IMG/VR virus record: IMGVR_UViG_3300028920_000022
Location: 248,001 to 312,000 of that record
DNA: 64,000 nucleotides
Direction: 5' to 3' (one strand)
The translations under genes and the position numbers were made by a program. This document shows, one piece after another, positions 3,932 to 64,000 of this stretch. Each line of letters begins with the position of its first letter. Position 1 is the stretch's first letter. Below the pieces are notes generated by a model, which saw only the letters and a list, made by a program, of their open reading frames with translations, was not told the origin of the DNA and did not search any database.

Positions 3932-4633
3932 ATGGCACTTAAACCTTTACAAGCAGGTCGTGAGCCACTCGGTCAGTTCGATGGCTATGATGATGAAATT
4001 ACTCTTGCAGCTGGTGGCTTCAGGGGTGGCGAAGTTTGTACTCTACTCTATATCCCCGTCGGTGGAACAGATAGAGCTGCAAAGGATGCCGATGGCACAG
4101 ATGGTTATGTCGGAACTACAACTCAGTTGCGTCCCGTTGTAACTCGTACCCTGGCTGACGGTTCCCGTCCACTCTTCCTGTCTGATGATGGCTCCTCAGG
4201 TTACGGACAATTGTTCGGTGAACTGATTGGCGCTACCGTTGGTCAGATTGGTAATGCTCCCGGTACCGGTACAGCACTTGGTCCACACACTGCCGCAGGT
4301 AGTGGTAAGATCACTTGCTGGGATAAGCCCGGTCTGTATGCAGTAACCCTGGACGCAGTTGTCACTGGCGCTGCTGGTCTGAGTCCCGCCAACGGTACCC
4401 TCGCTGGTGGAGACCCTCTCTATGCTACCGCTACTGGTCTACTGACTCCAGTTGCAGCGAATGACTTCGATACCGTCGGTATCGTCGTGGCTCGTTTCAT
4501 TGAATTCCAGACTAATGGAAGCTTGGTTACGACTCCAAATACTTTGGTTTCGGCTCTGAACTCTCCATCAGGTACTGCCGCTGCGCGTGCAAACCTGACC
4601 CAGGCTGTGATTCATTTCAACCCAGAAACATAA
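3932..4633 (+). CDS. Putative capsid decoration/cement protein
   Basis: 233 aa, rich in Gly/Ala/Thr, immediately upstream of the major capsid gene with similar codon bias; 2 DGY motifs. Confidence 0.6.
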   Translation: MALKPLQAGREPLGQFDGYDDEITLAAGGFRGGEVCTLLYIPVGGTDRAAKDADGTDGYVGTTTQLRPVVTRTLADGSRPLFLSDDGSSGYGQLFGELIGATVGQIGNAPGTGTALGPHTAAGSGKITCWDKPGLYAVTLDAVVTGAAGLSPANGTLAGGDPLYATATGLLTPVAANDFDTVGIVVARFIEFQTNGSLVTTPNTLVSALNSPSGTAAARANLTQAVIHFNPET

Positions 4634-4645
4634 TAAATTAAATAT

Positions 4646-4720: not shown

Positions 4721-5740
4721 ATGGCAGGCGAGATTTTTAATAGTAAGGGCGAACTTAATGCAGCGAACCTGCAAGATGCCTTCACCCAAATGGCTAAATT
4801 CGCGTCTGTACTGGAAGAGAATACTCCGTCTAACCTGACCCTCGCAGGACAGCCCTCCATGAACGATGAGAAACGTGACTCCTTAATCGAGCGCGCTATC
4901 ATGAGCCAGGAAGGGAAGATTGCACTAGCTCAGGCGATGGCTAACCCTATCCGTCGGAACCTCGACTACCAGGGAATTGCTCGTAGAGCACTGGTAGTTG
5001 ATCCGCTGCCCCAGGGCGCACTTCCAGTATATGACCGAGATATTGATGTAGCAGCTGTTGTTGTTTCTAGCAATGGCACCGGTCCTGAAAGCCGTGTATT
5101 CGGCGACCGCGTTACGGTTCCTGAGTTTGAGATTTACTCAAACCCAACCGTGCGTATTGCCGAAGTTAAGCGGCGTCGGTTCAATGTGATCGACCGTGCA
5201 GTTCAGAAGAGTCGTCAAGAGATTATGGCACAGGAAGATGCCAACGTCTTCGCCGCGATTGATGCTGCCGCTGCGGTCGAAAACACTGTCTCGGATATCG
5301 CTGATAGCGGTATGCTTAAGGCTGACTTGGTCGACCTTAAAGTCCAGGTTGATCGCTGGGACCTCGTTACCACCAAGTTCTTCATGAATATTAATGAGTA
5401 CACTGATATTCTGAATTGGGCTTCCGGTGGCGGTCAGGGTGCCAACGGTGGCGAAATTGATCCCGTGACTCAGCGCGAAATCCTCCAGACTGGTCTCTAT
5501 GCCCATATCTGGGGCGCCGATATCATGGTGTCAAAGATCGTTCCTCCAGGTACCGTTTATTCCTGTGCAGACCCCGAATTTTTAGGAGTTATGCCGGTTC
5601 GGCAGGACATTGAGGTACTTCCAGCTGACGAGCCTAGGCGGCTAAGTCTAGGCTGGGTCATTAGTGAAATTATTGGCATTGGTATTGTCAACCCACGCGG
5701 TTGCGCCCGTGGCAATAAGAGCACTATCATTGGTGCGTAA
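4721..5740 (+). CDS. Major capsid protein (HK97-like fold)
   Basis: 339 aa with strong RBS and highly biased codon use, followed by a terminator. Segments such as IALAQAMANPIRRNLDYQGIARRALVVDPLPQG and GWVISEIIGIGIVNPRG resemble HK97-type capsid proteins of large uncultured phages (from memory). Confidence 0.85.
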   Translation: MAGEIFNSKGELNAANLQDAFTQMAKFASVLEENTPSNLTLAGQPSMNDEKRDSLIERAIMSQEGKIALAQAMANPIRRNLDYQGIARRALVVDPLPQGALPVYDRDIDVAAVVVSSNGTGPESRVFGDRVTVPEFEIYSNPTVRIAEVKRRRFNVIDRAVQKSRQEIMAQEDANVFAAIDAAAAVENTVSDIADSGMLKADLVDLKVQVDRWDLVTTKFFMNINEYTDILNWASGGGQGANGGEIDPVTQREILQTGLYAHIWGADIMVSKIVPPGTVYSCADPEFLGVMPVRQDIEVLPADEPRRLSLGWVISEIIGIGIVNPRGCARGNKSTIIGA

Positions 5741-10165: not shown

Positions 10166-11668
10166 ATGCCCACACTGAGGAATTTATTAAGGCAGCATTT
10201 AGACATTGCCGGCTCTAAAAACCATGCAGCAAATCTATCTTTAACTGATGAGCCATCTTCTTTAGGAACGCCAGTTGCTGGGCAAACTGGTGTTGTTGCT
10301 TCCATTGTAGTTGGCGTGTCTGTGGTTGTGTCCGGATTAACTGGAATGACCACCAACAGTGTTGGGCGATTTCTAGAGATTTCTGGAGCCAACACTATTG
10401 GTAATAATGGTACGTTTCGTATTCTTAGTTTTATTAATGCCACATCTGTAACCATTGAAAATCTTTCTGGAGCTACGGATGCAAACAACGGAAGCATTCA
10501 TTGGGTAGAGAGATTACCTTATACACTGGAGACAGATTTAAACTACATACGAACTGATCGTGCTGCTATTAAGGGGGTTGGGTACAGTCAAGCTATTCCA
10601 ACGTACATTAGAGATTCTGACACTACGCAATTGATTCCAGCAAATTTGGCGAACATTGCTGGCAAGACCACTGATGCCACATCATTATTGTATTATATTA
10701 GGAGCATAGACATTCCGGTTACGACTGGAGATACATATATTTTGTACGAATCTCCTGGAAATTTACCATATGCATATGCGGTTGATTTAACTGGAATACC
10801 GGTATCTGATGGATATGATAGTGGTAATGACAACGCCACAGAGGCGGTTATTGTTGATGATAGTAATGGGGCGGCGTTACGGGTTTTAGCTGGCGCATAT
10901 GCTGGGCAATTAATTTATGGTCGTATACGTGGTGGAATATCTGGTGTTGATGGTGACAGTTTCGAGGTAGAGTTTAGGTCAGTAGATGACGGTTATGATT
11001 TGAGCACATCGGTAGCGTACACATGGGAAGCTACGCAAAGCGATTCTATTGGATTATTTTATCCATACCGAGAGAGAATTGATCGTTTACCCGAGTATGC
11101 ATTTAAGCCTCCAGTAAGCAGTGGTGGAACCAGCACTAGTGTAGTTGGTGGTGACTTATCGGGATCTTTACCGAATCCAAGTGTAGTTGATTTAACCATT
11201 ACGGGGCAGCAGTGGGGATCGGTATTATTTCATGATGGTCTTAGTTGGGTGGCGATGGGTCCTGGGACTGATGGTTATGTATTAACCACACATGATACAT
11301 TTGCAGATCCAACATGGACTGAGCCTCCTGGGGCATCTGGTGGGATAACAGCCAATCAGCACAGCGCATTGCGTCAATTGATACATTTAGCTGACGGGGT
11401 AGGCGGACCATTTGAGGGGTTTGTTTCTGGCACGTACAGGGAGATTTTACCAGCGGAGGATCCATTTCCTACGCAAGTTATTTGGTGGGATTCTGCAGCC
11501 AAAAATAAGAAGATTGTGGAGAAGGTTTTAACCAGGAACGGGCAACAGTTACCAACAACTACGCAGTGGAAGGTATATAATTCAGGAGGCGCGGTAGAAG
11601 CGACAGTTACGGATACAATTACCTATTCTGGGGTATTTGAAGTTAATAGAACAAGGACGGTTAGTTAA
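10166..11668 (+). CDS. Putative virion structural (collar/appendage) protein
   Basis: 500 aa, Gly/Thr/Ser-rich beta composition, coupled to neighbours; 3 DGY motifs. Confidence 0.55.
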   Translation: MPTLRNLLRQHLDIAGSKNHAANLSLTDEPSSLGTPVAGQTGVVASIVVGVSVVVSGLTGMTTNSVGRFLEISGANTIGNNGTFRILSFINATSVTIENLSGATDANNGSIHWVERLPYTLETDLNYIRTDRAAIKGVGYSQAIPTYIRDSDTTQLIPANLANIAGKTTDATSLLYYIRSIDIPVTTGDTYILYESPGNLPYAYAVDLTGIPVSDGYDSGNDNATEAVIVDDSNGAALRVLAGAYAGQLIYGRIRGGISGVDGDSFEVEFRSVDDGYDLSTSVAYTWEATQSDSIGLFYPYRERIDRLPEYAFKPPVSSGGTSTSVVGGDLSGSLPNPSVVDLTITGQQWGSVLFHDGLSWVAMGPGTDGYVLTTHDTFADPTWTEPPGASGGITANQHSALRQLIHLADGVGGPFEGFVSGTYREILPAEDPFPTQVIWWDSAAKNKKIVEKVLTRNGQQLPTTTQWKVYNSGGAVEATVTDTITYSGVFEVNRTRTVS

Positions 11669-12036
11669 TGAGTGATAGCCCTGCTGTAATTTTGTATGAT
11701 CCTAATGGTAACGAAGTAACCATACGGGACGGGTATGAGGTTACGGCATCTCAATCGGGTGTGCCTATAATTGGGGTAGACAGTGATGGGTATGCTAGAA
11801 TCTTACAATTAGATGGTACGGGAGCTATAGCTACGGTAAGTGCGCCGAAGACCAAGCGATTTGAGGTAGCGTCAACCACAGTGACATACATTGGATCTGC
11901 AGTAGTGGGTTCGTCGGAGGGTGATGCGGTATGGTCGATAACCAAGTTAATTACGACAGTAGACGGGGATCCGGTTTCCGCCAAAGTTGCATTAAATGCT
12001 GTATGGGATAATCGGGCAGCGGAGGTTTATCTGTAA
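11668..12036 (+). CDS. Small putative virion protein
   Basis: 122 aa; YIGSAVVGSSEGDAVWSITK...WDNRA resembles small phage structural proteins; 2 DGY. Confidence 0.55.
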   Translation: MSDSPAVILYDPNGNEVTIRDGYEVTASQSGVPIIGVDSDGYARILQLDGTGAIATVSAPKTKRFEVASTTVTYIGSAVVGSSEGDAVWSITKLITTVDGDPVSAKVALNAVWDNRAAEVYL

Positions 12037-13760
12037 TGGCATTTCCATCTGGATGGTCACGTAAGTGTCCGATTACAATTGATGCCAGCATGGTAACTGG
12101 CGATATTGTTTATGACCTTATTGTATTACTTGATCAAAGAGCTTTTCCTACAGAAATGATTACCGGTGGAGGTGGAAACGCTTGTCAAGAAGGAGGCGGT
12201 GATTTACGATTTTCAGCTGATGATGCCGGTGTGGAACAGTTGGCGTGTGAAATTACCCGGTGTGAATTGGATCCTACTCCGGACAACAGTAGAGTTATGT
12301 GTTATGTTCGTGTTCCGAATGTTTCTGATACTGTTGATACAACATTTTATGTTTGGTATTCAAACAGTGTTGCGACGATGCCAGACGCGGATGACCCATA
12401 TGGTATGCACAACGTGTGGAATTCTAGTGATTTAACCGCTCCAACATTTTATCATGTTTATCATTTTAACGACGATCCTACTGGTCCCCAACCGCCGTTT
12501 AGCGATTCAAGTACAAGTGGTGATGGTACGTACAGCAGCGCAACGTTAACTACATGTGAGGGGTCATCTGATGGAGTACCTGGCAGGGGAATTGATTTTG
12601 AATCTATAGAAAAGTACATTTATCTGGACGACGGCGTTACTACGGTGCCTGGGACAGGAGATTTTTCTGTACTTTATTTTACCAATTTCGACAACGCCGT
12701 AGATGCATTTTATGGGTGGCAAGAATATGATGACGATACTTTTTTTACTTATGGAAATATTTATTATTCCCCGTGGACCAACTTTCGTGTGTGTCTGGGC
12801 AACATAAATGCCCAAAATACCTTTATGATTGGTGATGATTTTAGTGGGAATAACACCATTGGATTCGCCAGAGATGGCGATGACGTTGATGTTTTTTTTC
12901 GAGGAGATTTAATCACTACTTATACTGGTTTTGCTGCTGCAAACGTAGGCGCATCATCCAGTCGAACGCGATGGTTGCAACAATACCACCCAATAAATGA
13001 TGCAAAATTTTATGAGATATGGTTTTTCGCAGTAGCGATCAATTCTTATTATAACCAAGTACTTTATAGAAACTTCACTGACCTTTCAACATATATATCG
13101 GCGGGAACGCCTGAAGCAGCAGCAATTGAAGCTGAAATATATTTTGACGGGCTTCATGCCGGCTCTGAAGTTAGAGTTTATGAAGTCCCGCATGCACAGA
13201 TTTGGACATGCGAATGTGTAGGTGATGTGTTAGGAAGTCTTGGCGGGACGTATATGACTTTTGAGGTACAGAATGCTTCTGATACTACATCTTATTATGC
13301 TTGGTTTGATGTCGATGATGGTTATGTGGATCCCGCGCCAGCAGGTAGGACAGGTATTGAAGTAGATATATCCATGAATGATTCTGCCGAAGATGTAGCG
13401 AGCGCCTTATCTTCCGCAATTGATGGGTATGGGAACATGACGGCAACTGTATCATCCGACATTGTTACGATTACTAACTTGATAAATGGGGAAACTTCGG
13501 AGCCGCTAGATGTTGATACGGGGTGCACAGTTACTGTAATTCAATTGGGAGGAACCAGTATTGCTGAAATAGATGGTATTGAAGTTAGTACGGGTTCTAG
13601 CTGGACCGCTACATACCAAGTACTTAGACCCAGGAGATGTTTAATAGTAATACATTCTATTTATTATAGCTACATTAGGTATCAAACAGTACTTTCTTTA
13701 GCCGGTTTATTGGTTCCGGCGGGAGTATTACAGCGGTATGATAGGAATTATAGTACCTAA
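12036..13760 (+). CDS. DUF2341-domain / LamG-like virion protein
   Basis: N-terminal GWSRKCPITID...GDLRFS...LACEI...YVRVP...FYVWYSN matches the DUF2341 pattern, followed by a lectin-like beta region; 2 DGY. Confidence 0.65.
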   Translation: MAFPSGWSRKCPITIDASMVTGDIVYDLIVLLDQRAFPTEMITGGGGNACQEGGGDLRFSADDAGVEQLACEITRCELDPTPDNSRVMCYVRVPNVSDTVDTTFYVWYSNSVATMPDADDPYGMHNVWNSSDLTAPTFYHVYHFNDDPTGPQPPFSDSSTSGDGTYSSATLTTCEGSSDGVPGRGIDFESIEKYIYLDDGVTTVPGTGDFSVLYFTNFDNAVDAFYGWQEYDDDTFFTYGNIYYSPWTNFRVCLGNINAQNTFMIGDDFSGNNTIGFARDGDDVDVFFRGDLITTYTGFAAANVGASSSRTRWLQQYHPINDAKFYEIWFFAVAINSYYNQVLYRNFTDLSTYISAGTPEAAAIEAEIYFDGLHAGSEVRVYEVPHAQIWTCECVGDVLGSLGGTYMTFEVQNASDTTSYYAWFDVDDGYVDPAPAGRTGIEVDISMNDSAEDVASALSSAIDGYGNMTATVSSDIVTITNLINGETSEPLDVDTGCTVTVIQLGGTSIAEIDGIEVSTGSSWTATYQVLRPRRCLIVIHSIYYSYIRYQTVLSLAGLLVPAGVLQRYDRNYST

Positions 13761-16716: not shown

Positions 16717-17175
16717 ATGAAGGTAACATTTGATGGATATGAGAAAATTATTCATGTTGTGGATGGATATACCGAATTAGATTTTGATGAAGATATTTAT
16801 TCTGAATGGAAACGTTGGGTATTAACCGCCCATAATGATGGATATTATCAAGCTTTAAGGGTGGTTGGCGGAGACCCTATTACAGGTACCCAAAATCTGG
16901 GGTCCACCTTTTTCTTAATGAATGGATGGGTGATTCAAAGCTGGGAGGGGGATCATGAATTGGTAATAGATGGAAACTTCTATCATGATGATGGAATTGC
17001 TCCCGTTATTCCTGTAGATGGACCCTATACGGTTTTGGTTACTAGAAAAGTTTCAAACTTGATTGATCAGATTATTACGGAAACCGGCGGATTAACCGAA
17101 GAACAGGCAGACCAATTAGAAGCCACTTGGAAGAGAAGTAGCTTAATTATTCCCATTTTTAGTAATACCAGTTAA
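16717..17175 (+). CDS. Hypothetical protein, probably virion-associated
   Basis: 152 aa; 3 DGY in the first 43 residues. Confidence 0.6.
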   Translation: MKVTFDGYEKIIHVVDGYTELDFDEDIYSEWKRWVLTAHNDGYYQALRVVGGDPITGTQNLGSTFFLMNGWVIQSWEGDHELVIDGNFYHDDGIAPVIPVDGPYTVLVTRKVSNLIDQIITETGGLTEEQADQLEATWKRSSLIIPIFSNTS

Positions 17176-20623: not shown

Positions 20624-20974
20624 ATGGCAACCTCTTTATTCGCAAATCCCGGACAAACCATTAAATTAGTTATTGAAACCTTAAATGCTAATGGTTCTAG
20701 GGCGGATGGTTATGCTGATGGCTATGCTACCCCCATTATAAGTACATTCTATCTGGTTTCTGGTGCTGCCGCTTCCGGATTCCCCCAGACTATGACTCAG
20801 CTGGAGACGGGAGTATATTACCATTCTGTCACCTTGCCTTCTGGCACTAATGGGATCGGTACCTTTATTGCCAACGCAGCATGGAATCAGCCCGGTACAG
20901 GCTTGTCTAGAAATGAGTTGTTTATCATTAATTCAGCGTTACCCTTTGGTAATACTACAGTGAATTTAGGATGA
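20624..20974 (+). CDS. Small Ig-like putative virion protein
   Basis: 116 aa, resembles the N-terminal domain of the 22934 ORF; DGYADGY. Confidence 0.55.
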   Translation: MATSLFANPGQTIKLVIETLNANGSRADGYADGYATPIISTFYLVSGAAASGFPQTMTQLETGVYYHSVTLPSGTNGIGTFIANAAWNQPGTGLSRNELFIINSALPFGNTTVNLG

Positions 20975-24095: not shown

Positions 24096-24601
24096 TGGTT
24101 GATCGTAAAACACAACTAAAAATCATCCAAGCATTGAAGGATAAGATCCGAGATCATGAGACTGTAAAGGACATGTTTAAAGAACATGGTGTGGACTTGT
24201 CAGAGATTGATTTAATTCCAATGGCGTTTGATGAAGATTTGGATGTTTCTGCGAGAACCGATCATGGCATAATCTATCTCAATGCAAAGCTATTAAAGGA
24301 CGATAAGATTTCTACGGACGATCATTATTTGGTGCATGAGATAACGCATTTTCTTCAACAGACCTGTGGTGACAAGCCTACTACTGGCGGCGGCAGTGGG
24401 GAAGATTATGTAACGAACAAGTATGAGGTAGAGGGGTTTCAGAATCAAACCGAGTATATTTCTGACGAATATGGGGATGAAGCTGCTGAAAAGTATGTAG
24501 ATCGGGTATTAGATCATCATAATTTAAGAGGGAAGAAGCGGGAAGACAGGAAAGATGTTTTGCTTCAATTAGCTTCGCGACTGGACAAGAATGCCTTGTA
24601 A
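24095..24601 (+). CDS. Zinc metallopeptidase-like protein (HExxH)
   Basis: IIYLN...YLVHEITHFLQQ...YVTNKYEVEGF, a zincin HExxH plus downstream Glu pattern. Confidence 0.7.
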   Translation: MVDRKTQLKIIQALKDKIRDHETVKDMFKEHGVDLSEIDLIPMAFDEDLDVSARTDHGIIYLNAKLLKDDKISTDDHYLVHEITHFLQQTCGDKPTTGGGSGEDYVTNKYEVEGFQNQTEYISDEYGDEAAEKYVDRVLDHHNLRGKKREDRKDVLLQLASRLDKNAL

Positions 24602-52716: not shown

Positions 52717-54795
52717 ATGCCCTGTAATCCACATGATAACACATTAAATCCTATAGTGAGTCCAGGAATTGCTATTCCGGGATTACCAGGGCTACCCACA
52801 TCTCCTGTACAACTACCAGATTTTGAGTTTCCAGAAGGGTTTCCGGAGGATCTTTTAGATCTTATCAATCGGCTGCAAGCGCTGTTTCCCAGCGGTATTT
52901 TTAAACCTAATCTGGATGACGCCATACATACTGTACTGACAGCCTTAGCCAGCTTATTTAACCAAATAGCCCCCTATCTTTCTTTCTATCATTTCATCAT
53001 GGCGCTGTTAAATATGGTGTTATGTATTATTGAAGTATTATGTTCATTTTATAATGTAAGGAAAACATTACGGGCATTAAAGAGATTATTTAAAGTATGT
53101 TTGCCAAACTTTTTAGCTATGTTCCCCTGGGCAGCGCTATTAGCAATGATATTAGCTTTGTTGCTGCTAATCTTGGCTTTAATTCAATATATAATTGAAA
53201 AGCTTCTTGCTTTGATAGAGGATTTATTGCGTAACATTAGGGCGCTGGGGTCCGCTATTACGTTAAATGACGATGACGCCCAAGAGGCTATTGCTATCAA
53301 GATTGCCTCACTATTGTGTTTAATCGAGGGGTTATTTTCCGTTTTTGCAGCATTGGCGGCTATTTTTGCTATAATTAACTCTTTAGCGGCAATGGCAGGG
53401 TTTGATGTTTGTGGCGATGACAACAGTATTTTGGGCAATATTACTTGTTGTGATGATGAAGTTTGCCCACCATTTGTAGACGATCATCCTGATGCGGTCA
53501 TTTCCGACACAAATGGTATGTTAATATATTACAATCACATTTCGCCAGGATTTGATGCTACTGATAATTTTAGTAGAGCAGAGTCATGGCAATTTGTAAA
53601 CAATAATAATTCTAGTTACCCACTTAAGGACATTATTACAAGTTATGGGGCGGACGATTTTTGGCCAGAAGGCAAGACATATAATGGACAATCATCATTA
53701 ACCAAGGTTCCATATACTGTTGATTTTACCATTCCCAACTTTGACCCCTCTTTCTTCCACCCTTCGGATCATGGCGGAGCAAGAAACTTTATTGTACAGA
53801 ATGCAGTAGTTTCGATTCGTCCATATATTGGAACCTATGATGAGTTAAATGATATTGAGTATGGAAATTCGGATGGAACTTTTAAACTTCTTGGCGGCAT
53901 AGTTTATGATGGTGAGGTCGGAAATACATATTATGTCAATAACAAAGCTGCCACATTAGAAACATTCATACACAAAGCTGGCACTTATGATGGAGAAGCC
54001 CCCGATCATGATGATGGATATTATTTCCAAGGATTACATTTCGATTGGAAATTTAGTCACGAAGTGTTAGCAGACAACCGACTAATTACTATAGGTTGCA
54101 TTCCAGATTTGAAATACGAGAGAGCAGCTTTAGCTGCCAGGTATGCTGATAAACGTCCGGTTCTTGAACAAGTGCCAGCATTAGCGGACGGAAACATCAT
54201 TCCGGATTATTCTAAATTGCAGGCGTGTGCTGATGCAGCCATGGCTACTTTGAGACAAGATGTTTCTGAGGATAATATAGAAGCCTATAGAACCGCTGTG
54301 TTGGCGTGTTTGGATGATGCGCAAACGCAAACCGAACAGTCATATAAAAACATTTTAACTGTAGCGGTAAATGTTTTTGAAAGCACCGTTGCGATAGATC
54401 CCGAAGTACAATTTGTAACTCGCCCTATTACGGTAACAGTTGTACTTAAGGACGTAAATGGTGGTTCAGTAGCAGCAAATGTTCCTGCTAGTGTACAAAG
54501 TGACATTGCCGACTTGATAGAGGGAAGTGTTACTTTCGGAGAAATAAGCGATTTTACATATGATGGCTATGTGAATTTTACTGCAGAAATTACTAGCGAA
54601 GTAGGTGGGGACGGCGTATTGACTGTATCCTTCAATAACAATGAATTTCAGAACGTATTAAATTTGAACAATGATAATCCAACTTCGTTTGAAACGAATT
54701 CATTGAGCTATACGTTTGTTGGAATTGGAACGGTGGGTCAGGAAGATCAGAAGGAGCGTCGTGATGCGACTGATATTGCGAGGAACGAGTCATGA
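52717..54795 (+). CDS. Baseplate-region protein with long hydrophobic helices and a C-terminal Ig-like domain
   Basis: PWAALLAMILALLLLILALIQYII and two further hydrophobic helices; 2 DGY. Confidence 0.55.
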   Translation: MPCNPHDNTLNPIVSPGIAIPGLPGLPTSPVQLPDFEFPEGFPEDLLDLINRLQALFPSGIFKPNLDDAIHTVLTALASLFNQIAPYLSFYHFIMALLNMVLCIIEVLCSFYNVRKTLRALKRLFKVCLPNFLAMFPWAALLAMILALLLLILALIQYIIEKLLALIEDLLRNIRALGSAITLNDDDAQEAIAIKIASLLCLIEGLFSVFAALAAIFAIINSLAAMAGFDVCGDDNSILGNITCCDDEVCPPFVDDHPDAVISDTNGMLIYYNHISPGFDATDNFSRAESWQFVNNNNSSYPLKDIITSYGADDFWPEGKTYNGQSSLTKVPYTVDFTIPNFDPSFFHPSDHGGARNFIVQNAVVSIRPYIGTYDELNDIEYGNSDGTFKLLGGIVYDGEVGNTYYVNNKAATLETFIHKAGTYDGEAPDHDDGYYFQGLHFDWKFSHEVLADNRLITIGCIPDLKYERAALAARYADKRPVLEQVPALADGNIIPDYSKLQACADAAMATLRQDVSEDNIEAYRTAVLACLDDAQTQTEQSYKNILTVAVNVFESTVAIDPEVQFVTRPITVTVVLKDVNGGSVAANVPASVQSDIADLIEGSVTFGEISDFTYDGYVNFTAEITSEVGGDGVLTVSFNNNEFQNVLNLNNDNPTSFETNSLSYTFVGIGTVGQEDQKERRDATDIARNES

Positions 54796-56924: not shown

Positions 56925-59900
56925 ATGGCAACCATTAGAACACAAAATGAGATAGTTTTAAGCTTGTTGGAATTTTTCAACAATGCACAACCATCTCTGG
57001 ACACAAAGCCGGGGCAGGTATCCCGTGATGTTTTGGTAGATGGTTTGGCGGTTCAGCTATCTCGATTATATGAGGAATTACAGAGAAACGCAGCATTATC
57101 TTCGTTACGTTTAGCTTTGGGGTCCGATTTAGATCGATTAGCTTCAAACTATGGTGCTGTTAGGCAGCGTGGCACCAAATCTTCTGGTCCTGTTTTATTA
57201 ACGTTTGATGAAATTGTTGCAGATATTGGAATCAATGCTGGGGACATAGTAACTGCCAGAAACGGTGCTACTTTTGTGGTTCTTTCTAATACAGTAGTTA
57301 ATCCTGTGTTTCTTAATTCTTATAGAGCGACTGCTACCAGAAATAGGGCAGATTTAGACTTAGCCGGGATTACTGATGAATTTGCTGTACAGGTACAAGT
57401 AGAAGCTTCTGCTACTGGCGTTCAAGGGAACGTTTCCAAATATTCTATCGCATCTACCGAAATAGCCGGAGTTTCACACGTGGTTAACGTTTCTCCTTTT
57501 GGTGGAGGATCTGCACCAGAAGATGATGCCACATTTAGAAGTCGTGTTTTGGCAATATTTAGTGGGGCGAACACAGGAACGGCTCTTGGTTATCGCAATG
57601 CTGTTTTGTCCGATCCTGCGGTTTTGGATGCAATTGTAATACAGCCTGGCGATACACTTATGACCCGCGATGGCACCCAAGTAAGCACAGATAGTAATGG
57701 TGATTATATTATCATTTCCGAGGGAACCGGAGGCAAAGTTGATGTGTATGTGTATGGAACTAGGTTGCTGGAGGTTTTTGATAGTTTTGTATATAACGAT
57801 TTAAGCAACACAGATGATCCAACCAATACCGCTAATGATTTTGTGTTGGGGCAAATCGATGGCGATGAAACGAAAACCGTTACTCAGCGCCGATTAGACA
57901 ACTTGGAGACTGGTATTTTACCTGCCCAACCCGCTAACAACATTGTTTCTGTAACCGGATCTATTAGTGGTGGCAATTTTGCCGCAAAAACCGTGGATAG
58001 TTTGGGGCGAGTTTCTGGGAACTACGAATTAGTGGTGGATACTGGGGTATATGGCGGAAGCCCCTGGGGTTTTGATAAATTACATTGGGTTTCTGCTTAC
58101 ATTGCAGATTATCCAGAAGATATTACTAAAGGGTCTTTTAATGGACAGGACTCTTTATCTTTTCCTGATACTTTAGAAATTACCTCAATTACCCAAAATA
58201 TCAGCGTAGTTAATGAGAACAGCACAGTATCACGATCAGATCGCTCCAGTATTCAATTAAAACATTATCCAATTACCAACGTTACCAGGGTTTTTAACTC
58301 TACTACTGGCGAACGTTATGTTATTCAATCTCAGAATCCAGATGGCACCGGATCTATTAACACTAATGGTCGTATTGTAATAAGTGGCAGCAGTTTGCCG
58401 GCAGTAAGTGACACATTACAGGTTGATTATACTTGGATATTTGATTATGATCCTTGGTGGGATTATGATAATCATTTAACCATTCGTAACCCAAGAAGTG
58501 TTAATGATAGTATAGATTGGGGTTATTCGAACGCAGTAAGAAGGGAGCAGGCTACACTTACAGCTTCCGGTTCTTCGTTGGTAGCTACGGTTACGCATCC
58601 AATTTCTACGGTTATTAGTGTAAATGTTTTTGAGGAAGAAAACTCTACAGTAACACTTTCTTCGGGAAGTTTGGCAGTAGTTGTTAGTCAGACGGTTAGC
58701 AACGTAGTAAGTATAGTTAAAACAGCAAATGGTGCTGAAATTTGGAACACCAGCGATGACGACGGGTCTTTTAGCGGTTATACCATATTTTTACCAACAG
58801 ACACATCAGCGGCATATAGCAATGCGGTTACTGTGGTTTATAACGCAGTAGATGTCTATAATGTTGATGGATATGAGGGAAGTTTTAATAGTAACCAAAT
58901 CAACATTGTACCATCAACTACCGCTGTAGCGGGAGAATTGGTCGAAGTAAATTATTTAGCTAATATCAGCACTTTGTTACCCGCCACCACTCTTTCTTCA
59001 TTACCAGCCATTAGAAACGGTAATGGCTTTGATACCACCACTTCTACAGGCGTTGGGAATCAACCAACTTCTCATTTGTTTAGTTCAGGTAGTATTATCC
59101 AAAATTTGCGACAGGCACCTAGCCGTTTAACCTTGTCGGTTGCTGGCAACATTTCTGCCGGTATATTTACGATTACTGGCACGACAATGGTGGGTGTATT
59201 TGATGCTGTATATACTGTTGGGTTAGCTGGGCTGAAACTGGATTTGAGTGCAGCCATACGTTCTGCGTTAGGGCTGACTTCATCTGGATCTATTCCTAGT
59301 AATTTGAAACTTGCTAGAGTAACCAGCGTAGAAAAGGTGGAGGCGACGGTTAATCTTGATGTTTTGAGCGTTTTGGCTACATATGATACGCTTGGATGTG
59401 CATTGAAGGATAATAGTTTTGTTAAGGACGAGGCTATTCTTGATACCAGCTTGACAGTTACTGAATTTACGTTACCTAGTACAGCAGATAACATTACCAA
59501 CACGCCAGCTGTTGGAGACCGTTTGAGGGTAACTTTCTATTATGTTCTAACCTCAGATACTGAAAATGTTTCATTTAGTCGTAGCGGCACCCAGAGCACC
59601 GAGAAGATATTTGCGATTGTAGATACCTTGGCAATTTCCAGCGGGTTTACTTCCACCATATCTCAAAGCGCTACCTTAACTGTTACCAACAAGAACCAAC
59701 CTACTCAAGGATCTCGTTATAAAGCGTATTATAATTATACTGCACCAAAACCTAATGAAAGAATTACTATTAGGTATAACTATAATAAACTAATTGGCGA
59801 TTCTACATTAAATATAGAAAACACCAGACCAATTACTGCAGATGTATTAGCAAAGGCAGCATTCCAGGTGTTGGTTGATGTTACGATGAATATTGTAGTT

Positions 59901-60164
59901 ACTTCTGAATTTTCCAATAACTCTGAAATAGTCAGGCAAAACGTTCAAGATGCGGTGACAGCAGCGCTTACTGCCAGTGAATTAGGAACTACGGTAGATT
60001 CTTCAGACTTGGTAGTTGTTGCCCAGCAGGTGGAGGGCGTAGATAGAGCGAGGATTTTATTCTTTAATTTAGCTGATGAGGCGGGCACGGTATTGAGTAT
60101 TACCGCCAGAAGTAATGAATTTTTGGTAGCAAACACTGTGACAATAGCGTTGGAAACTAGATAA
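56925..60164 (+). CDS. Baseplate J-like wedge protein
   Basis: DTKPGQVSRD, ALGSDLDRLASNYG, GVQGNV, GGSAPEDDATFRSR, GGKVDVYV motifs. Confidence 0.85.
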   Translation: MATIRTQNEIVLSLLEFFNNAQPSLDTKPGQVSRDVLVDGLAVQLSRLYEELQRNAALSSLRLALGSDLDRLASNYGAVRQRGTKSSGPVLLTFDEIVADIGINAGDIVTARNGATFVVLSNTVVNPVFLNSYRATATRNRADLDLAGITDEFAVQVQVEASATGVQGNVSKYSIASTEIAGVSHVVNVSPFGGGSAPEDDATFRSRVLAIFSGANTGTALGYRNAVLSDPAVLDAIVIQPGDTLMTRDGTQVSTDSNGDYIIISEGTGGKVDVYVYGTRLLEVFDSFVYNDLSNTDDPTNTANDFVLGQIDGDETKTVTQRRLDNLETGILPAQPANNIVSVTGSISGGNFAAKTVDSLGRVSGNYELVVDTGVYGGSPWGFDKLHWVSAYIADYPEDITKGSFNGQDSLSFPDTLEITSITQNISVVNENSTVSRSDRSSIQLKHYPITNVTRVFNSTTGERYVIQSQNPDGTGSINTNGRIVISGSSLPAVSDTLQVDYTWIFDYDPWWDYDNHLTIRNPRSVNDSIDWGYSNAVRREQATLTASGSSLVATVTHPISTVISVNVFEEENSTVTLSSGSLAVVVSQTVSNVVSIVKTANGAEIWNTSDDDGSFSGYTIFLPTDTSAAYSNAVTVVYNAVDVYNVDGYEGSFNSNQINIVPSTTAVAGELVEVNYLANISTLLPATTLSSLPAIRNGNGFDTTTSTGVGNQPTSHLFSSGSIIQNLRQAPSRLTLSVAGNISAGIFTITGTTMVGVFDAVYTVGLAGLKLDLSAAIRSALGLTSSGSIPSNLKLARVTSVEKVEATVNLDVLSVLATYDTLGCALKDNSFVKDEAILDTSLTVTEFTLPSTADNITNTPAVGDRLRVTFYYVLTSDTENVSFSRSGTQSTEKIFAIVDTLAISSGFTSTISQSATLTVTNKNQPTQGSRYKAYYNYTAPKPNERITIRYNYNKLIGDSTLNIENTRPITADVLAKAAFQVLVDVTMNIVVTSEFSNNSEIVRQNVQDAVTAALTASELGTTVDSSDLVVVAQQVEGVDRARILFFNLADEAGTVLSITARSNEFLVANTVTIALETR

Positions 60165-63100
60165 TGGCAAATCTGCGTATAACTAGAATTCGGGTAGTTG
60201 ATAGCACGTCAATACGGGCGCAATTTACTCACAATTTGGACACGACATTAAACGAATCCAATGTTAGTATTACTGCAGTTACACCAGGAATTCCAGCATT
60301 ACAGGTAGCGGAGGCATCGGTTGCCGGTGATATCATGTACATTCAAACGTATCCCATGACACCGTATGCCCAATATGATGTGGAATTTCAATCTACTAGC
60401 ACAAAACGGTTTAAATCTGAAGATGGACAAAATTATTTATTTGAAGATGGACGTACTAACGTTAAACGAGTAATTGGAGCCGAAGATCCAGCTAATCCAA
60501 TTACTAAGACTTTAAAGAAATATTTAGATAGCAGCGTTTATAACATTAACAATGGAACTTTAATTAATGATATTATCAACTCACAAGGCAATAATGTTAG
60601 CCGGGCGTTGTATGATGTTCGTCAAGCCAGTAGTGACAACTATTTAGAAGTTACAGTTACTGACGAAAGGAAAGTAAGGGGATCTGGTCCTTGGGATCGT
60701 TTAAACGAAGAAGGCGCTTTTGAAATTCTTCGGGTTGGCAAGACCACAACTAACGCAACTTTGGAAGGTAGCATTACATATACTTCGTTTCCATCGGATC
60801 CGATTTCGTTGCAACAAACCAACATAACTAATGAGCGTTTAACAGCCGGAACTGGTGATTCAACCTTTAACGATCTTATATTAACAGTTGCTTATTCTCC
60901 AATAATAAAACTGGACAGTTTACGAGTGTTGTATCAAGCTGGTGGCTCAGACACTTATGATATACGTACTTACGGATATCAGATAAAGACGCCTCGTTAT
61001 GATGCAAGTTACGCTTCAACACTCGCAACATTAGCCAACAACCAAATAAAGTTAAGCGATAGAATTTTGGAGAGCGATTCTACTTTTGTTCCACCAGCAG
61101 CTGGGGACACTATAGTTATTAGTTATAAATATAAGAGTTTGGGTAAAATCATTGATCCAGACAGTGTTACTGTTACTCAGGTATTAACTTCCACCAGAGA
61201 GGTCACTCCTCCAATTATTACAGATTTTTATTTAGATTACGCACCAATAGTAACTGCTGACGATCAAACTCCAACCAGTGGTGGGGTGACGTTTTTGGAT
61301 CCACTTTCTAATCCACCATTTTCTGATACACCTGCGGCATTTAATAGGGAAATTCCTTATCGTACTGATGGGTTGCCCCAATCTACTGGAGAATATAGTA
61401 TCGATTATACATCGGGCAGGGTGGTGGTTTATGGTGAAACGACCAATGATGGTACCGGAAACTTCCCTCCCGTTGCCACCTACAACTATCGAAAAACATA
61501 TAGTTCCCGACTAGACTATACCTATAATCCTGAAACGTATGAATTAGTTGCTTCTCCGTTGCGTGATTTAGCTACAGAAAACGCCAGCATTTCGTTTGAT
61601 TATGAATATACTTTGGTGCCAGATCAAGATTTCGTTGCCCAGGTTCATACAGAATCTATAGATGAAAGAATAGATAATAGACTTTCTACTTTAGGATCTC
61701 TATACGTAGAACACACACCTATAACGAACGTATTTCGTGTATATAACGAAACTAGTGCTGAACTGTATACGGTAGTTAGGTTTAATGATAATACGGTATT
61801 TTTCTCATATAGAACCCCTCCTAGAATAAACTCAGTAACGCGAGAAAGAGCATCATTTACCGATGTTTTGCATGAAGTTCTTTTGGTTAATACTGAATTT
61901 ACCAATGCATTGAGTACTCGGGTTTTTAAATTAAACTTAGAAAACGATAACATCATTGCCAACACCGAAGACGCAATTGGGTCAAGTTATAATTCTAGCG
62001 TTTCGTTCAGCCGCACAGATATTTTTGGAACTGAGCTATATTACGACAGTCAAATTTTGACAGCAACAGCTAACACAAATAGATTATTGGTTGGGCAATA
62101 TCAGATAGATTATCGCAATGGAATAGTTTATGTTGGTGTAAGTGCTAGCCAAGATTTGGATTTGGGAACCATTAATTATAAAAACGGTGTAATAAGACCG
62201 GAAAACCAGCACGTCACTGCTGTTTCTGAAGTTTATTATAGTATTAGCAACATTACCGGTATAGCAGAACGTTTAGAATATGACAGTTTTGCAGATCAAG
62301 CTATTACACCTAGTGACTATGATGTTACTGATGAGCGATTTTTGAATGAAGACACTACATTACCATATATTAACAGTGCTGGTCAAATCACAGTTTCTGA
62401 TGATATCAAAGCTGTGCGCGGAGTATATGACGCTTATGACTTGAATAATCATGCTGAGGTAACTAATTTTGCTGTTGGAGCTACGGTTTCTTCAAACGTT
62501 ATTACGCTGGACTCTGCCGGCGTAGAAAAAACAGAAAATTATACAATTAGTGCTGGCGGAACCGTGGTTGTTGATACTATTACTGCTGGCGCAGCTATTG
62601 TGGGTGTGACGAGCGTTCTAAGACTTGCTGATAATGTAGAGTTGTGGGACAATGGCGGAGTATTTAACTCATACACGATTACCTTGTCTGGCGCCGGCAC
62701 TCCTGTTGTCGGGCAAGCAGTAAGAGTTATTTATAATGTACAATTAAATGGTGGTGCAACCCCGGTGGTTGATTACAACCGTGGGGATTATTTTATTGAT
62801 TATGAATATTTGGCGGATGAAATACTGGTAAGTTACGAATATGGTGATAATAAGATAGATTTTCGTAGTAGCTTAGCAATAGATGAAGGAGAAACTTACT
62901 ACGTTACTTATAGTATCGGGGCGTTGCGTAATTCTTTATTGAGCAATTTTGGTAGTTTGGTGGATGTTCCTATTCTGAATACATTTGATGTTTCTTTGGA
63001 TAGAGAAATTTATCGTGATGCATTACAAGCGGCTTTACAGTCGTTTACCAAAGGTCCCACACTACCCGCCATTAGCCTGTTGGTTTCTCAGATTACCAAA

Positions 63101-64000
63101 ATTGATCCTCGTATTACCGAGTCTGTGTTTGATATTTGGTCTTTAGGGGTAAGTAATCTGTATTGGAATGCGGTAGATTATACCGGAACTCCCACCTTAA
63201 TGGCAGGAAAATTTGATAATGGCGTATTGTTGGATACATCCGGTCAGACCATCACTTTTCCTGTGTCCAGCAATTTGCGATTAGAAGAAGGCACGTTGGA
63301 GTGTTGGGTAATTCCAGAGTGGGACGGTTTAGATAATGATGCCACTTTGACCTTTTCTGATTTGACTCGGGATGGGTATCGTCTTTCTACTTCTAATATT
63401 TTTATTGGAGCCGATAGCCATAATCCAACTTATTCAGATACTTATACGTTTTCTGTTAACAGGACAGACACTAACAGCCCAATTGGCTTGCCTTCTGCTG
63501 TATATACTCAGGCTGGCTTATTTGTTTATTATGATGATGTGTTGAAGCGATGGTATATGTTAGTAAAGGATCGTCCAGACGGTTACACATATCAAGGAAC
63601 CATCCAATCATCTGGTGAAGTTTACGACGTAAATTATATTACCGATTTAGGTGAAATTACCGATTCTACTCGTAGTTTTACAGATAAAATAGAATTTTCT
63701 TTAAAGTTAGATACACACGATGCGTTAAGTCCTGACGGATATACTACCGGGGATGGTTATGTACCCGGCTATTCTTTTGATGGGATTACGTTTATGGCAG
63801 ATGATCAGCATTATATTTTTGATGCTGGTGGCACCACAAGTACCAACCGTTTTTCCATTTATAAGGATGGGCGCGGGTATTTGAATTTTGCTGTATGTGA
63901 CAATGGTCGTAGTGCTAGCGGTAAACATACTTATAAAGTAAGTGCGGATATATCGGATTGGTTAGCTGGACAAGCTCATCATTTGGCTATTTCTTGGAAA
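60164..64000 (+). CDS. Large baseplate/wedge protein with LamG-like domain, 3'-truncated (not in the ORF track)
   Basis: ATG 60164 overlaps the previous TAA (MANLRITRIRVVD...). The frame was open wherever I translated it, including the last codons (WLAGQAHHLAISWK). GKFDNGVLL...EEGTLECWVIPEW is a LamG-like pattern; 4 DGY. Confidence 0.75.
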   Translation, partial: MANLRITRIRVVDSTSIRAQFTHNLDTTLNESNVSITAVTPGIPALQVAEASVAGDIMYIQTYPMTPYAQYDVEFQSTSTKRFKSEDGQNYLFEDGRTNVKRVIGAEDPANPITKTLKKYLDSSVYNINNGTLINDIINSQGNNVSRALYDVRQASSDNYLEVTVTDERKVRGSGPWDRLNEEGAFEILRVGKTTTNATLEGSITYTSFPSDPISLQQTNITNERLTAGTGDSTFNDLILTVAYSPIIKLDSLRVLYQAGGSDTYDIRTYGYQIKTPRYDASYASTLATLANNQIKLSDRILESDSTFVPPAAGDTIVISYKYKSLGKIIDPDSVTVTQVLTSTREVTPPIITDFYLDYAPIVTADDQTPTSGGVTFLDPLSNPPFSDTPAAFNREIPYRTDGLPQSTGEYSIDYTSGRVVVYGETTNDGTGNFPPVATYNYRKTYSSRLDYTYNPETYELVASPLRDLATENASISFDYEYTLVPDQDFVAQVHTESIDERIDNRLSTLGSLYVEHTPITNVFRVYNETSAELYTVVRFNDNTVFFSYRTPPRINSVTRERASFTDVLHEVLLVNTEFTNALSTRVFKLNLENDNIIANTEDAIGSSYNSSVSFSRTDIFGTELYYDSQILTATANTNRLLVGQYQIDYRNGIVYVGVSASQDLDLGTINYKNGVIRPENQHVTAVSEVYYSISNITGIAERLEYDSFADQAITPSDYDVTDERFLNEDTTLPYINSAGQITVSDDIKAVRGVYDAYDLNNHAEVTNFAVGATVSSNVITLDSAGVEKTENYTISAGGTVVVDTITAGAAIVGVTSVLRLADNVELWDNGGVFNSYTITLSGAGTPVVGQAVRVIYNVQLNGGATPVVDYNRGDYFIDYEYLADEILVSYEYGDNKIDFRSSLAIDEGETYYVTYSIGALRNSLLSNFGSLVDVPILNTFDVSLDREIYRDALQAALQSFTKGPTLPAISLLVSQITKIDPRITESVFDIWSLGVSNLYWNAVDYTGTPTLMAGKFDNGVLLDTSGQTITFPVSSNLRLEEGTLECWVIPEWDGLDNDATLTFSDLTRDGYRLSTSNIFIGADSHNPTYSDTYTFSVNRTDTNSPIGLPSAVYTQAGLFVYYDDVLKRWYMLVKDRPDGYTYQGTIQSSGEVYDVNYITDLGEITDSTRSFTDKIEFSLKLDTHDALSPDGYTTGDGYVPGYSFDGITFMADDQHYIFDAGGTTSTNRFSIYKDGRGYLNFAVCDNGRSASGKHTYKVSADISDWLAGQAHHLAISWK

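Follow-up and report, generated by a model that had tools for sequence, protein, structure and literature searches.

Why would a phage write the same three residues, Asp-Gly-Tyr (DGY), again and again into proteins that are unrelated to each other? This is the question raised by a 64,000-nucleotide stretch (hereafter the window) of IMG/VR record IMGVR_UViG_3300028920_000022, a 458.7 kb phage contig. The first-pass annotation of the window, made from sequence alone, counted 40 in-frame DGY in 15 ORFs and proposed that they might be a virion-wide sequon for a Tyr modification, or a cross-linking or metal-binding motif on the particle surface. The observation stands exactly as it was made, while its interpretation is only partly supported.

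An ordered tripeptide selected at the protein level

In a rebuilt set of 47 ORFs (20,821 aa), we found 40 DGY, in exactly the 15 ORFs and with the per-ORF counts previously listed, and every nucleotide position given was correct. DGF occurs 5 times (about 6 had been announced), DGW once, NGY once and EGY never. The expected number of DGY is 4.3 from residue frequencies, 7.8 from a first-order Markov model, 4.3 +/- 2.1 (maximum 13) in 2000 within-protein shuffles, and 6.7 given the 152 DG dipeptides and the Tyr content of each protein (Poisson P about 2e-18). The motif is therefore about nine times more frequent than chance and is by far the most over-represented tripeptide. Dipeptide bias does not explain this excess since, once DGY is removed, DG is found 112 times (110 expected) and GY 44 times (65 expected), that is, DGY creates the bias rather than the opposite. 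Order matters as well, as the other arrangements of the three residues are at background against 4.3 expected (DYG 1, GDY 4, YGD 4, GYD 9, YDG 7). At the DNA level, GAYGGNTAY occurs 40 times, always on the + strand and always in frame 0, with a codon usage that follows that of the genome, while in relatives the in-frame count is 528 against 56 from codon shuffles and the off-frame or antisense count is 44 against 64. Selection thus acts on the protein, as had been claimed.

An artefact of composition, dipeptide bias, a DNA-level signal or duplication of one domain can be considered refuted. Although some relatives inflate their counts through internal repeats, and counts across orthologues are not independent, the 40 sites in the window lie in unique contexts, which showed no homology to each other in an all-against-all comparison, and the motif has no extended logo. 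The two computational outcomes set beforehand as fatal to the idea, loss of the enrichment upon correction and confinement of the sites to the core of one repeated fold, were therefore not observed.

A motif restricted to a subset of virion proteins in one clade

The distribution of DGY is bimodal, with 3-20 DGY per 1000 aa in peripheral virion proteins and background levels in the major capsid protein (MCP), the hub, enzymes and glycan-pathway genes. The 32 ORFs without DGY (10,616 aa) would hold about 20 at a uniform rate (P about 1e-9). The MCP itself (4721..5740, phrog_2522 at 1e-78), which is a convenient reference, has 0 DGY here and 0 in 79 relatives (26,926 aa), and there are none in the 3.3k aa encoded in the 10 kb upstream of the window. 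The first-pass labels MCP, sheath and baseplate J were confirmed, whereas tube, tape measure, hub and spike are plausible from position and size but only weakly supported by family hits.

The DGY-bearing ORFs, which like the MCP gene are on the + strand, start directly upstream of the major capsid gene with a 233-aa protein (3932..4633) that has 2 DGY, at aa 17 and 57. In this family of 74 members, D57-G58-Y59 is invariant in 71 of 71 members, and in an alignment of 49 sequences with a mean identity of 44%, although its flanks vary. An AF2 model (pLDDT 77), which has no fold match in the PDB, places site 57 in a long loop and site 17 at a strand end. A 500-aa virion-module protein with no known family follows (10166..11668), with 3 DGY at aa 215, 275 and 369. 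Its family averages 2.9 DGY per 1000 aa, but the sites are lineage-specific since relatives carry DGF, DAA or DGA there. Next come a 122-aa protein (11668..12036) with 2 DGY at aa 21 and 40, whose family averages 11.6 DGY per 1000 aa, a 574-aa protein (12036..13760) with 2 DGY at aa 428 and 463 and no Pfam or PHROG family, an 802-aa protein (13793..16201) with 4 DGY in two close pairs at aa 36/42 and 97/107 and a weak match to phrog_1236 ('head protein'), a 152-aa protein with no known family (16717..17175) with 3 DGY at aa 6, 16 and 41, a 116-aa protein (20624..20974) carrying the tandem DGYADGY at aa 28 and 32, whose family averages 13 DGY per 1000 aa, and a 298-aa protein (22934..23830) with 1 DGY at aa 111, which is kept in 9 of 10 orthologues.

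The next is a 534-aa neck protein (24591..26195), which has more than 615 homologues and 7 DGY, at aa 26, 112, 164, 185, 188, 227 and 286. It combines an N-terminal FN3 domain, a neck-protein fold that matches phage 812, Pam3, SaPI1 and phiKZ, a Cys4 cluster and three invariant C-terminal HxH motifs. In an alignment of this protein, 11 of the 12 residues of the DGY at 185/188, 227 and 286 are invariant or at least 90% conserved (D185 is the exception), as are D26 and G27. In its AF2 model (pLDDT 79), sites 26, 112 and 164 lie in turns between strands, with Tyr starting the next strand, but some invariant sites (for example, C-A-D-G-Y at aa 284-288) sit in segments that the model cannot place and could be buried.

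Further downstream are a 1256-aa virion protein (26834..30604) with 2 DGY at aa 84 and 201, which are kept in 4 of 5 and 3 of 5 orthologues, and a 1747-aa virion protein (31048..36291) with 2 DGY at aa 267 and 803, the former being kept in 7 of 8 orthologues, while the 2184-aa orthologue in the DGY-poor lineage has none. The 821-aa tail sheath (38035..40500) has 3 DGY, at aa 173, 180 and 197, which are not conserved in relatives and are outside the conserved C-terminal core, since sheath matches cover only residues 523-820 in one search and 645-819 in another. A 692-aa baseplate-region protein (52717..54795) has 2 DGY at aa 433 and 616, where the orthologue in the DGY-poor lineage carries DEI and DPY, and the 1079-aa baseplate J-like wedge protein (56925..60164; Pfam Baseplate_J at 1e-18, phrog_6 at 9e-31) has 1 DGY at aa 648. 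Finally, the N-terminal 1279 aa of a 2218-aa fibre protein that runs off the window (60164..64000) hold 4 DGY, at aa 1070, 1139, 1191 and 1197, with 1 more beyond the window, and orthologous fibres in seven genomes carry 3-7. Where these proteins can be read, the DGY-bearing parts are peripheral, namely the FN3 domain of the neck protein, the non-conserved N-terminal part of the sheath, fibres, and a dockerin-like fibre protein encoded just outside the window.

The enrichment is clade-wide in these uncultivated phages of 300-460 kb, with 542 DGY against 64 expected in 89 related loci, and many sites are invariant across orthologues that are 43-65% identical while their flanks vary, which indicates purifying selection on the tripeptide itself. 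Side-chain chemistry matters, since DGY:DGF is 542:65 and DGY:NGY is 542:51, although Y and F, and D and N, are about equally frequent overall, and NG is not avoided in general. In contrast, sister lineages with orthologous neck, sheath, hub, baseplate and fibre proteins (26-42% identity), and one with an MCP that is 67.5% identical, show little or no enrichment, that is, 2-3 DGY per locus against 1.0-1.5 expected, and by our own tally about 7 against about 3 over roughly 15.5k aa of one contig. At the orthologous positions, these lineages carry DGT, NGY, DHY, DPY, DDE or GGA. The folds evidently do not need the Tyr, which argues for a lineage-specific reader of the motif.

Possible readers of the motif

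A possible source for such a reader is found 5.8 kb past the window, where a search of the flanking sequence for modification genes revealed a 27 kb glycan-biosynthesis island directly after the two DGY-richest fibre genes. It holds at least 6 glycosyltransferases (GTs) plus NDP-sugar, CMP-ulosonic-acid, acetyl-, formyl- and methyl-transferase genes, and its 37 ORFs are at background for DGY (2 against 1.6 expected). Its core (GT4-like, GT2, two unknowns and a Polysacc_synt_2 dehydratase) keeps its position next to the DGY-richest fibre gene in at least 11 genomes, although the size of the island varies. Our leading reading, which is tentative, is that DGY is a clade-specific and order-specific short linear motif, installed at exposed turns and loops of peripheral virion proteins (neck FN3, outer sheath, baseplate periphery, fibres and capsid-associated proteins), mostly at pre-existing D-G or D-x turns, and recognised by a trans-acting factor encoded by this phage clade. 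The most likely factor would be a cytoplasmic protein-modifying enzyme that uses the Tyr hydroxyl, with the preceding Asp and the Gly turn as specificity determinants, and the most plausible chemistry would be O-glycosylation fed by the island, which would give the particle a sugar-decorated periphery. What the analysis establishes is the enrichment, its order specificity, the conservation of sites, the restriction to a subset of virion proteins and to one clade, the placement in turns or loops in two models, and the adjacent GT genes, whereas it is only inferred that a factor reads the motif, that this factor is an enzyme and that its product is a Tyr-linked glycan.

This reading has precedents, but it also faces difficulties. 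Phage-encoded GTs glycosylate capsid and tail-tube subunits in mycobacteriophages (Freeman et al., 2023, as summarised in PMC12619734), and Tyr O-glycosylation exists in bacterial S-layers (PMC2943079). However, the link between the island and the virion proteins is only positional, no enzyme is tied to DGY, and the GTs could equally glycosylate DNA (bioRxiv 10.1101/2023.12.21.572611) or host surface polymers. The DGY-poor sister contig also carries at least the last sugar gene of the island (the terminal dehydratase) and its helicase, so presence of the island has not been shown to co-vary with the motif. In addition, no acceptor tripeptide is known for Tyr glycosylation and, at the sites that vary, D and G are kept more often than Y, which is replaced by L, F, A or T, a pattern that also fits a turn whose third residue is only loosely constrained.

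This last point leads to the first rival, a live one even if doubtful and slightly less likely in our view, which is that DGY is purely structural. Asp-Gly would make a tight turn or Asx-turn that the following Tyr caps (through a hydroxyl hydrogen bond and packing over the turn), a device used repeatedly to stabilise the many beta-rich accessory domains and fibres of a very large particle. The sites that can be modelled lie in turns between strands, the motif is flanked by hydrophobic, strand-like residues and is absent from helical, enzymatic and core proteins, sites in sister lineages are often D-G-x or D-x-x, and T4 virion proteins show a mild excess (6 DGY outside the Seg endonucleases). 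However, structural preference explains neither the 8:1 excess over DGF nor the 10:1 excess over NGY (NG is the classic type I' turn), nor the background levels in beta-rich virion modules of phage G and Eggerthella phage LE2-3. Above all, orthologous folds in sister lineages manage without the Tyr, while 15 or more unrelated proteins of one clade acquired it together.

A second live rival, which we regard as unlikely, is a non-covalent docking motif displayed many times on the particle surface and read either by a phage partner (a cement or decoration protein, an assembly chaperone, or sorting to an assembly site) or by an external ligand such as host or matrix polysaccharide, with Tyr stacking and Asp hydrogen bonding giving weak multivalent adhesion. 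The bare ordered motif, its clade specificity and its restriction to peripheral proteins fit this view too, motifs cluster in pairs 3-10 residues apart as expected for avidity, and they occur on FN3, dockerin-like and fibre modules that commonly mediate binding. Against it, no partner has been identified, an adhesion patch would be expected to tolerate other orderings or Trp/Phe, which are at background, and several invariant sites lie in proteins unlikely to meet external ligands, namely the neck protein and the small protein encoded next to the capsid gene.

Other chemistry at the same site is less likely still, and the cross-linking and metal binding suggested by the first-pass annotation are neither supported nor excluded. 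The options include (i) metal coordination by Asp and Tyr side chains at i and i+2 on the symmetry axes of trimeric fibres, analogous to HxH iron sites, (ii) Ca-binding loops, (iii) Tyr-based or succinimide-based cross-links and (iv) Tyr sulfation or phosphorylation. Fibre-like proteins of relatives carry up to 15 DGY punctuating coiled-coil-like repeats, the neck protein has its HxH pairs, and one island ORF has a weak Sulfotransfer_3 match (E = 0.0015), but this hint is below threshold and has no backing from PDB or NCBIfam. Many DGY proteins are not obviously fibrous or trimeric, and no kinase, Fic, peroxidase or PIMT gene was seen in the about 110 kb inspected.

Comparison with known systems

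The mycobacteriophage system resembles the one proposed here in that phage genomes encode the GTs themselves and that the glycans are on exposed virion proteins. There, however, they are reported at the C-termini of the capsid and tail-tube subunits, with no tripeptide motif (PMC12619734), whereas here the capsid and tube proteins lack the motif and the candidate acceptor is a Tyr in an ordered tripeptide spread over 15 or more proteins, on which a glycan is purely inferred. The Tyr-linked glycans of S-layer proteins in Paenibacillus alvei and Thermoanaerobacter (PMC2943079) show that such linkages are stable on prokaryotic surface arrays, but these proteins have only a few sites each, no consensus motif is reported, and transfer is made by a membrane oligosaccharyltransferase during secretion. 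In Bacteroidota, the motif D-(S/T)-(A/I/L/V/M/T) is likewise a minimal Asp-initiated tripeptide that marks many unrelated proteins for one O-glycosylation system (the general system is discussed in PMC8698959), and a 172 kb contig carrying a capsid-gene relative sits in a MAG labelled Bacteroidia. In that system, however, the acceptor is the Ser or Thr immediately after Asp and the reaction takes place outside the cytoplasm on exported proteins, whereas virion proteins are cytoplasmic and DGY has an intervening Gly, with Tyr as the only hydroxyl residue.

Giant viruses (chlorovirus capsid glycans and Mimivirus fibril glycans) have an autonomous glycosylation machinery in which a large virus-encoded cluster of sugar-nucleotide, aminosugar-modifying and GT genes serves the decoration of virion surface proteins and uses non-canonical acceptor motifs, although these are eukaryotic viruses and the chlorovirus sites are Asn-linked. 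The HxH motifs of T4 fibre proteins gp37 and gp12 are also short i/i+2 motifs repeated along phage fibres, with both side chains on one face of a strand, but their His ligands bind iron or zinc on the trimer axis and they are confined to fibres, whereas DGY also occurs in neck, sheath and baseplate proteins and no metal is implied by our data. As for the calcium loops of EF-hands and dockerins (DxDxDG), only 2 DGY, both in the dockerin-like protein, occupy positions 5-7 of canonical DxNxDGxIDxxD loops, in which Tyr is at position 7 which, by established EF-hand geometry, binds Ca through its backbone carbonyl while its side chain faces solvent. The 40 sites in the window lack the D/N residues at positions 1 and 3 and the acidic residue at position 12, and the logo, which shows no D or N at -2 and only 1.6-fold D at -4, indicates that most sites are not EF-hand-like.

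The DGY excess in the virion module

The window, positions 248,001-312,000 of a 458,729 bp contig (JGI Ga0272441_10000008, also IMGVR_UViG_3300028920_000022), is the virion module of an uncultivated huge myovirus. Family searches identify the major capsid protein (MCP; 4721-5740, phrog_2522 at 1e-78), the tail sheath (38035-40500), baseplate proteins (56484-56915 and 56925-60164) and a neck protein with an N-terminal FN3 domain (24591-26195), while nearly all other ORFs have no Pfam or PHROG family. No cultured phage is close, the best sheath match being 27% identical, to Eggerthella phage LE2-3. The capsid protein has more than 230 relatives in IMG/VR, the best 80 of which are 72-86% identical, with several lying on 320-452 kb contigs. 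One relative of the capsid gene (77% identity) is on a contig (JBMOGB010000001.1, 171,750 bp) binned in a MAG labelled 'Bacteroidia bacterium', which is a weak hint at the host phylum or a binning artefact.

Mobile-element-like genes interrupt the structural module, namely an endonuclease (phrog_4645), a DNA-methylase-like ORF and an HNH endonuclease (5830-7695, 7676-8716 and 19330-19749), and a LAGLIDADG endonuclease lies just upstream of the window (4867-5574 of L096, the stretch that precedes it). A NifS/IscS/DndA-like cysteine desulfurase (17344-18456; Pfam Aminotran_5 at 7e-34, TIGR03402 at 1e-44), which might act in Fe-S metabolism, thio-modification or DNA phosphorothioation, sits in the middle of the module and is followed by a 289-aa ORF of unknown function and an HNH endonuclease. 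A NUDIX hydrolase gene (26199-26807, phrog_1198 at 2e-12) lies immediately downstream of the neck protein, but was found next to the neck gene in only one related locus. Two minus-strand ORFs of 331 and 238 aa (21825-22820 and 36293-37009), with no detectable family, lie inside this otherwise plus-strand module. The ORF at 88-1974 is only the C-terminal part of a 1130-aa gene that starts upstream of the window (L096:6609-10001), and the TTG start called for it mechanically is not the real one.

The first-pass annotation had reported 40 in-frame Asp-Gly-Tyr (DGY) tripeptides in 15 ORFs, and this observation holds in full: using 47 ORFs (20,821 aa), we count 40 DGY in exactly those 15 ORFs, at the positions listed there. 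The expected number is 4.3 from composition, 7.8 from a first-order Markov model, 4.3 +/- 2.1 (maximum 13) in 2000 within-protein shuffles, and 6.7 given the DG dipeptides and the Tyr content of each protein (P about 2e-18), which rules out composition, overall or per protein, and DG/GY dipeptide bias as explanations. Without DGY, DG is 112 (110 expected), GY is 44 (65 expected) and NG is 98 (96 expected). DGY therefore causes the dipeptide excess, not the reverse. DGF occurs 5 times, DGW once, NGY once and EGY never, while the five other orderings of D, G and Y range from 1 to 9 against 4.3 expected. A compositional "sticky" Tyr/Gly/Asp loop is rejected because only one ordering is enriched. 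A signal at the DNA level (restriction, Chi-like or packaging) is rejected as well, since GAYGGNTAY occurs 40 times, always in frame 0 on the coding strand and with codon use like the rest of the genome. In relatives, the in-frame count is 528 against 56 from codon shuffles, whereas off-frame and antisense counts are 44 against 64. Selection is on the peptide, as the first-pass annotation had proposed from the varying codons, and an artefact is all but excluded.

Distribution across the clade and anatomy of the sites

The enrichment is a property of the clade. In 89 related loci (395,813 aa) DGY occurs 542 times against 64 expected, and it is the top tripeptide by Markov z-score. It is not a general property of phage virion proteins, since the same ORF caller gives 3 against 2.5 expected for phage G, 4 against 4.0 for Eggerthella phage LE2-3, and 10 against 2.8 for T4, with three of these ten in Seg endonucleases. 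The distribution is also bimodal. Upon clustering of 1237 ORFs into families (ORFs being named by their position in the window), two classes appear: (i) families at background, about 0.16 per 1000 aa, which include the capsid protein (0 in 26.9k aa), the families of ORFs 3101, 1974, 8722 and 24095, the cysteine desulfurase and the endonucleases, and (ii) families at 3-20 per 1000 aa, which are those of ORFs 3932, 10166, 11668, 20624, 22934, 24591 and 31048. A proteome-wide quirk of this genome is rejected, since 37 ORFs of the neighbouring glycan island (9,930 aa) hold 2 DGY against 1.6 expected and the 10 kb upstream of the window (3,273 aa) hold none. Within the window, the DGY-free ORFs would hold about 20 at a uniform rate. 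In the pooled related loci (L013-L091), GPQ, PQG, TGP and PTG are enriched as well, 5-10-fold, which indicates collagen-like Gly-X-Y repeats in some virion proteins of the clade.

No sequence logo extends beyond the three residues, and the motif does not mark one repeated domain, a possibility set out beforehand as one that would undo the reading. In an all-against-all BLASTP of the +/-40 aa contexts of the 40 sites, the best E-value is 0.003 in a database of 40 sequences, many of the alignments being short and including the shared DGY, and Pfam and PHROG find no shared family. Many sites are fixed while their neighbours vary. D57-G58-Y59 of ORF 3932 is kept in 71 of 71 orthologues of 43-65% identity, 11 of the 12 residues of the DGY at 185/188, 227 and 286 of the neck protein (all but D185) are invariant or at least 90% conserved in an alignment with 52% mean identity, site 111 of ORF 22934 is kept in 9 of 10 orthologues, and site 267 of ORF 31048 in 7 of 8. 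Other sites are lineage-specific gains and, where a site varies, D and G persist more often than Y (DGL, DGF, DGA, DAA). Sites cluster in pairs 3-10 residues apart.

As for structure, the secondary structure of the AF2 model of the neck protein (pLDDT 79) places sites 26, 112 and 164 in turns between strands, with Tyr opening the next strand, while the remaining sites fall in loops or low-confidence segments. In the model of ORF 3932 (pLDDT 77), which has no fold match in the PDB, the invariant site lies in a long loop. The three sheath sites lie outside the conserved C-terminal core. The three modelled neck sites are placed as in a generic Asp-Gly turn, but the exchangeability of turn-forming residues (N for D, F for Y) is not observed, with NGY at 51 and DGF at 65 against 542 DGY in the clade. 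Canonical Ca-binding loops (DxDxDG, with D/N at positions 1, 3 and 5, Gly at 6 and an acidic residue at 12) are rejected for most sites, since neither the 40 sites of the window nor the clade logo fit, there being no D/N enrichment at -2 and only 1.6-fold enrichment of D at -4. The exception comes from a 975-aa dockerin-like fibre protein encoded just beyond the window, where two of the 10 DGY are positions 5-7 of EF-hand-like loops (GDVNGDGYIDxxD and ADVDGDGYITxxD) and two others were created next to residues typical of dockerins. DGY thus appears both by adding Tyr after an existing DG and by adding DG before an existing Tyr. In L050, a related locus, fibre-like proteins (12228-13421 and 15551-17416) carry 12 and 15 DGY, which punctuate repeats of the form ETNRAxAAExxIxxAL-DGY, often as DGY-x6-DGY, and the N-terminus has the tail-fibre-like motif MSSxDKNKLNG. 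The neck protein has in addition a conserved Cys cluster (C331 and C333 in a CSC triplet, C345 and C348 in a CxxC pair, within aa 331-348) and three invariant C-terminal HxH pairs (H487/H489, H513/H515 and H528/H530), which recall the metal-binding HxH motifs of T4 fibre tips.

Relatives without the enrichment

The contrast that matters most comes from a profile search of 1.84 billion representative proteins, which shows that the neck family is large. DGY is about 20-fold enriched both in the 34 best-scoring representatives (142 against 6.5 expected) and in the next 45 (132 against 7.0), yet some full-length members have none. Among the genomes of these DGY-free members, a 169.7 kb contig carries orthologues of the neck, ORF 31048, sheath, hub, ORFs 50557 and 52717, baseplate J and the 2200-aa fibre at 26-42% identity, but by our tally over the non-overlapping ORFs it has about 7 DGY in about 15,500 aa, against about 3 expected. 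A second lineage, whose capsid protein is 67.5% identical to that of the window, is likewise not enriched, and its ORF 3932 orthologue has GGA where the DGY-rich clade has an invariant DGY. At the positions of the window's DGY, these lineages carry DGT, DTT, NGY, DDE, DHY, DPY, DST and similar. The DGY-poor relatives include Ga0486075_000049, and the DGY-rich clade includes IMG/VR contigs of 435, 452, 406 and 392 kb. So the same folds exist without the Tyr, and one clade changed more than fifteen unrelated proteins in the same way, which a lineage-specific factor that reads the motif explains more easily than fold stability does.

The glycan island and candidate readers of the motif

Downstream of the window, the gene order is baseplate J, a 2218-aa fibre (5 DGY), the 975-aa dockerin-like protein (10 DGY) and then a glycan-biosynthesis island of about 27 kb, which lies 5.8-33 kb past the window end (contig positions about 317,800-345,000; 13014-22928, 1103-20666 and 10884-17881 of the downstream stretches L098, L099 and L101). 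The island holds at least 6 glycosyltransferases (GT4-like, three GT2, Glyco_trans_1_2 and a GT29 of the sialyltransferase family), acetyl- (GNAT), formyl- and several methyl-transferases, ulosonic-acid genes (DHDPS-like, KdsA-like and CMP-transferase) and sugar-nucleotide genes (DegT, three epimerase/dehydratases and a Polysacc_synt_2 dehydratase). A 248-aa island ORF matches Sulfotransfer_3 at E = 0.0015, but this lead was dropped because neither PDB nor NCBIfam supports it. Although the size of the island varies between relatives, a small GT core, made up of the GT4-like and GT2 genes, two unknowns of 284 and 318 aa and the Polysacc_synt_2 dehydratase, is conserved. The order fibre, dockerin-like protein, GT4-like, GT2 is kept in seven genomes, down to 42% identity of the first GT, and in four further contigs a short core (GT4-like, usually GT2, one or two unknowns, the dehydratase) lies between the DGY-rich fibre gene and the tubulin gene TubZ, so that the core abuts the DGY-rich fibre gene in at least 11 genomes. 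This proximity is necessary for a glycosylation system, but not specific. It fits glycosylation of virion proteins, as known for mycobacteriophages (Freeman et al., 2023, PMC10527164, cited in PMC12619734), but equally fits DNA glycosylation (bioRxiv 10.1101/2023.12.21.572611) or host-surface remodelling. In the part of it that was read, the DGY-poor contig also has the island's terminal dehydratase and helicase, inverted.

Our tentative preference, which falls short of an even chance, is that DGY is a recognition site for a clade-specific modifying enzyme acting on Tyr, with glycosylation as the most plausible chemistry. A purely structural staple, made of a turn and a Tyr, is possible and follows closely, a non-covalent docking or adhesion motif is unlikely, and other chemistry at the site (metal, Ca, cross-link, sulfate or phosphate) is less likely still. 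The enzyme and docking readings share the inference of a trans-acting reader, which rests on order specificity, on side-chain specificity (Tyr over Phe 8:1, Asp over Asn 10:1), on restriction to peripheral virion proteins and on the clade contrast. What the analysis shows is the motif, selection on it and its distribution, whereas the existence of a reader and any function, including covalent attachment of a glycan, are inferred. The proposal of the first-pass annotation, that of a virion-wide sequon for a Tyr modification, is supported only in part, and its alternative, a cross-linking or metal-binding motif on the particle surface, is neither supported nor excluded.

A bolder and rather doubtful possibility is that DGY is the acceptor sequon of a phage-encoded, cytoplasmic tyrosine O-glycosylation system, in which the conserved GT core next to the fibre genes, with accessory sugar pathways that vary between genomes, would attach glycans to Tyr residues presented on Asp-Gly turns and thereby coat the neck, the sheath surface, the baseplate periphery and the fibres of 300-460 kb phages. 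This would be the first defined sequon for virion glycosylation in phages and the first consensus motif for Tyr glycosylation in any system. Full-text literature searches on a DGY motif in phages or in tail fibres returned no papers. Short acceptor or recognition motifs and virion glycosylation are known, whereas a Tyr-centred tripeptide spread over a whole virion periphery, in environmental huge phages, is not. If DGY is a modification or recognition site, it would be a rule readable from sequence alone that says which proteins of an uncultivated huge phage lie on the particle surface, and it would tie a large and otherwise unexplained glycan gene island to its substrates. It would extend virion glycosylation from a few mycobacteriophages to environmental megaphages, and could give glycobiology a Tyr-directed acceptor motif and a small peptide tag that a defined enzyme set might modify. 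Even if the motif proves purely structural, coordinated convergent installation of one tripeptide in 15 or more unrelated proteins of a single clade is an unusual evolutionary pattern, which the DGY-poor sister lineages make directly testable by comparative genomics.

A TubZ/PhuZ-type tubulin gene and a superfamily-2 helicase (L101:18512-19882) follow the glycan genes, and the order dehydratase, TubZ, helicase is conserved in many relatives.
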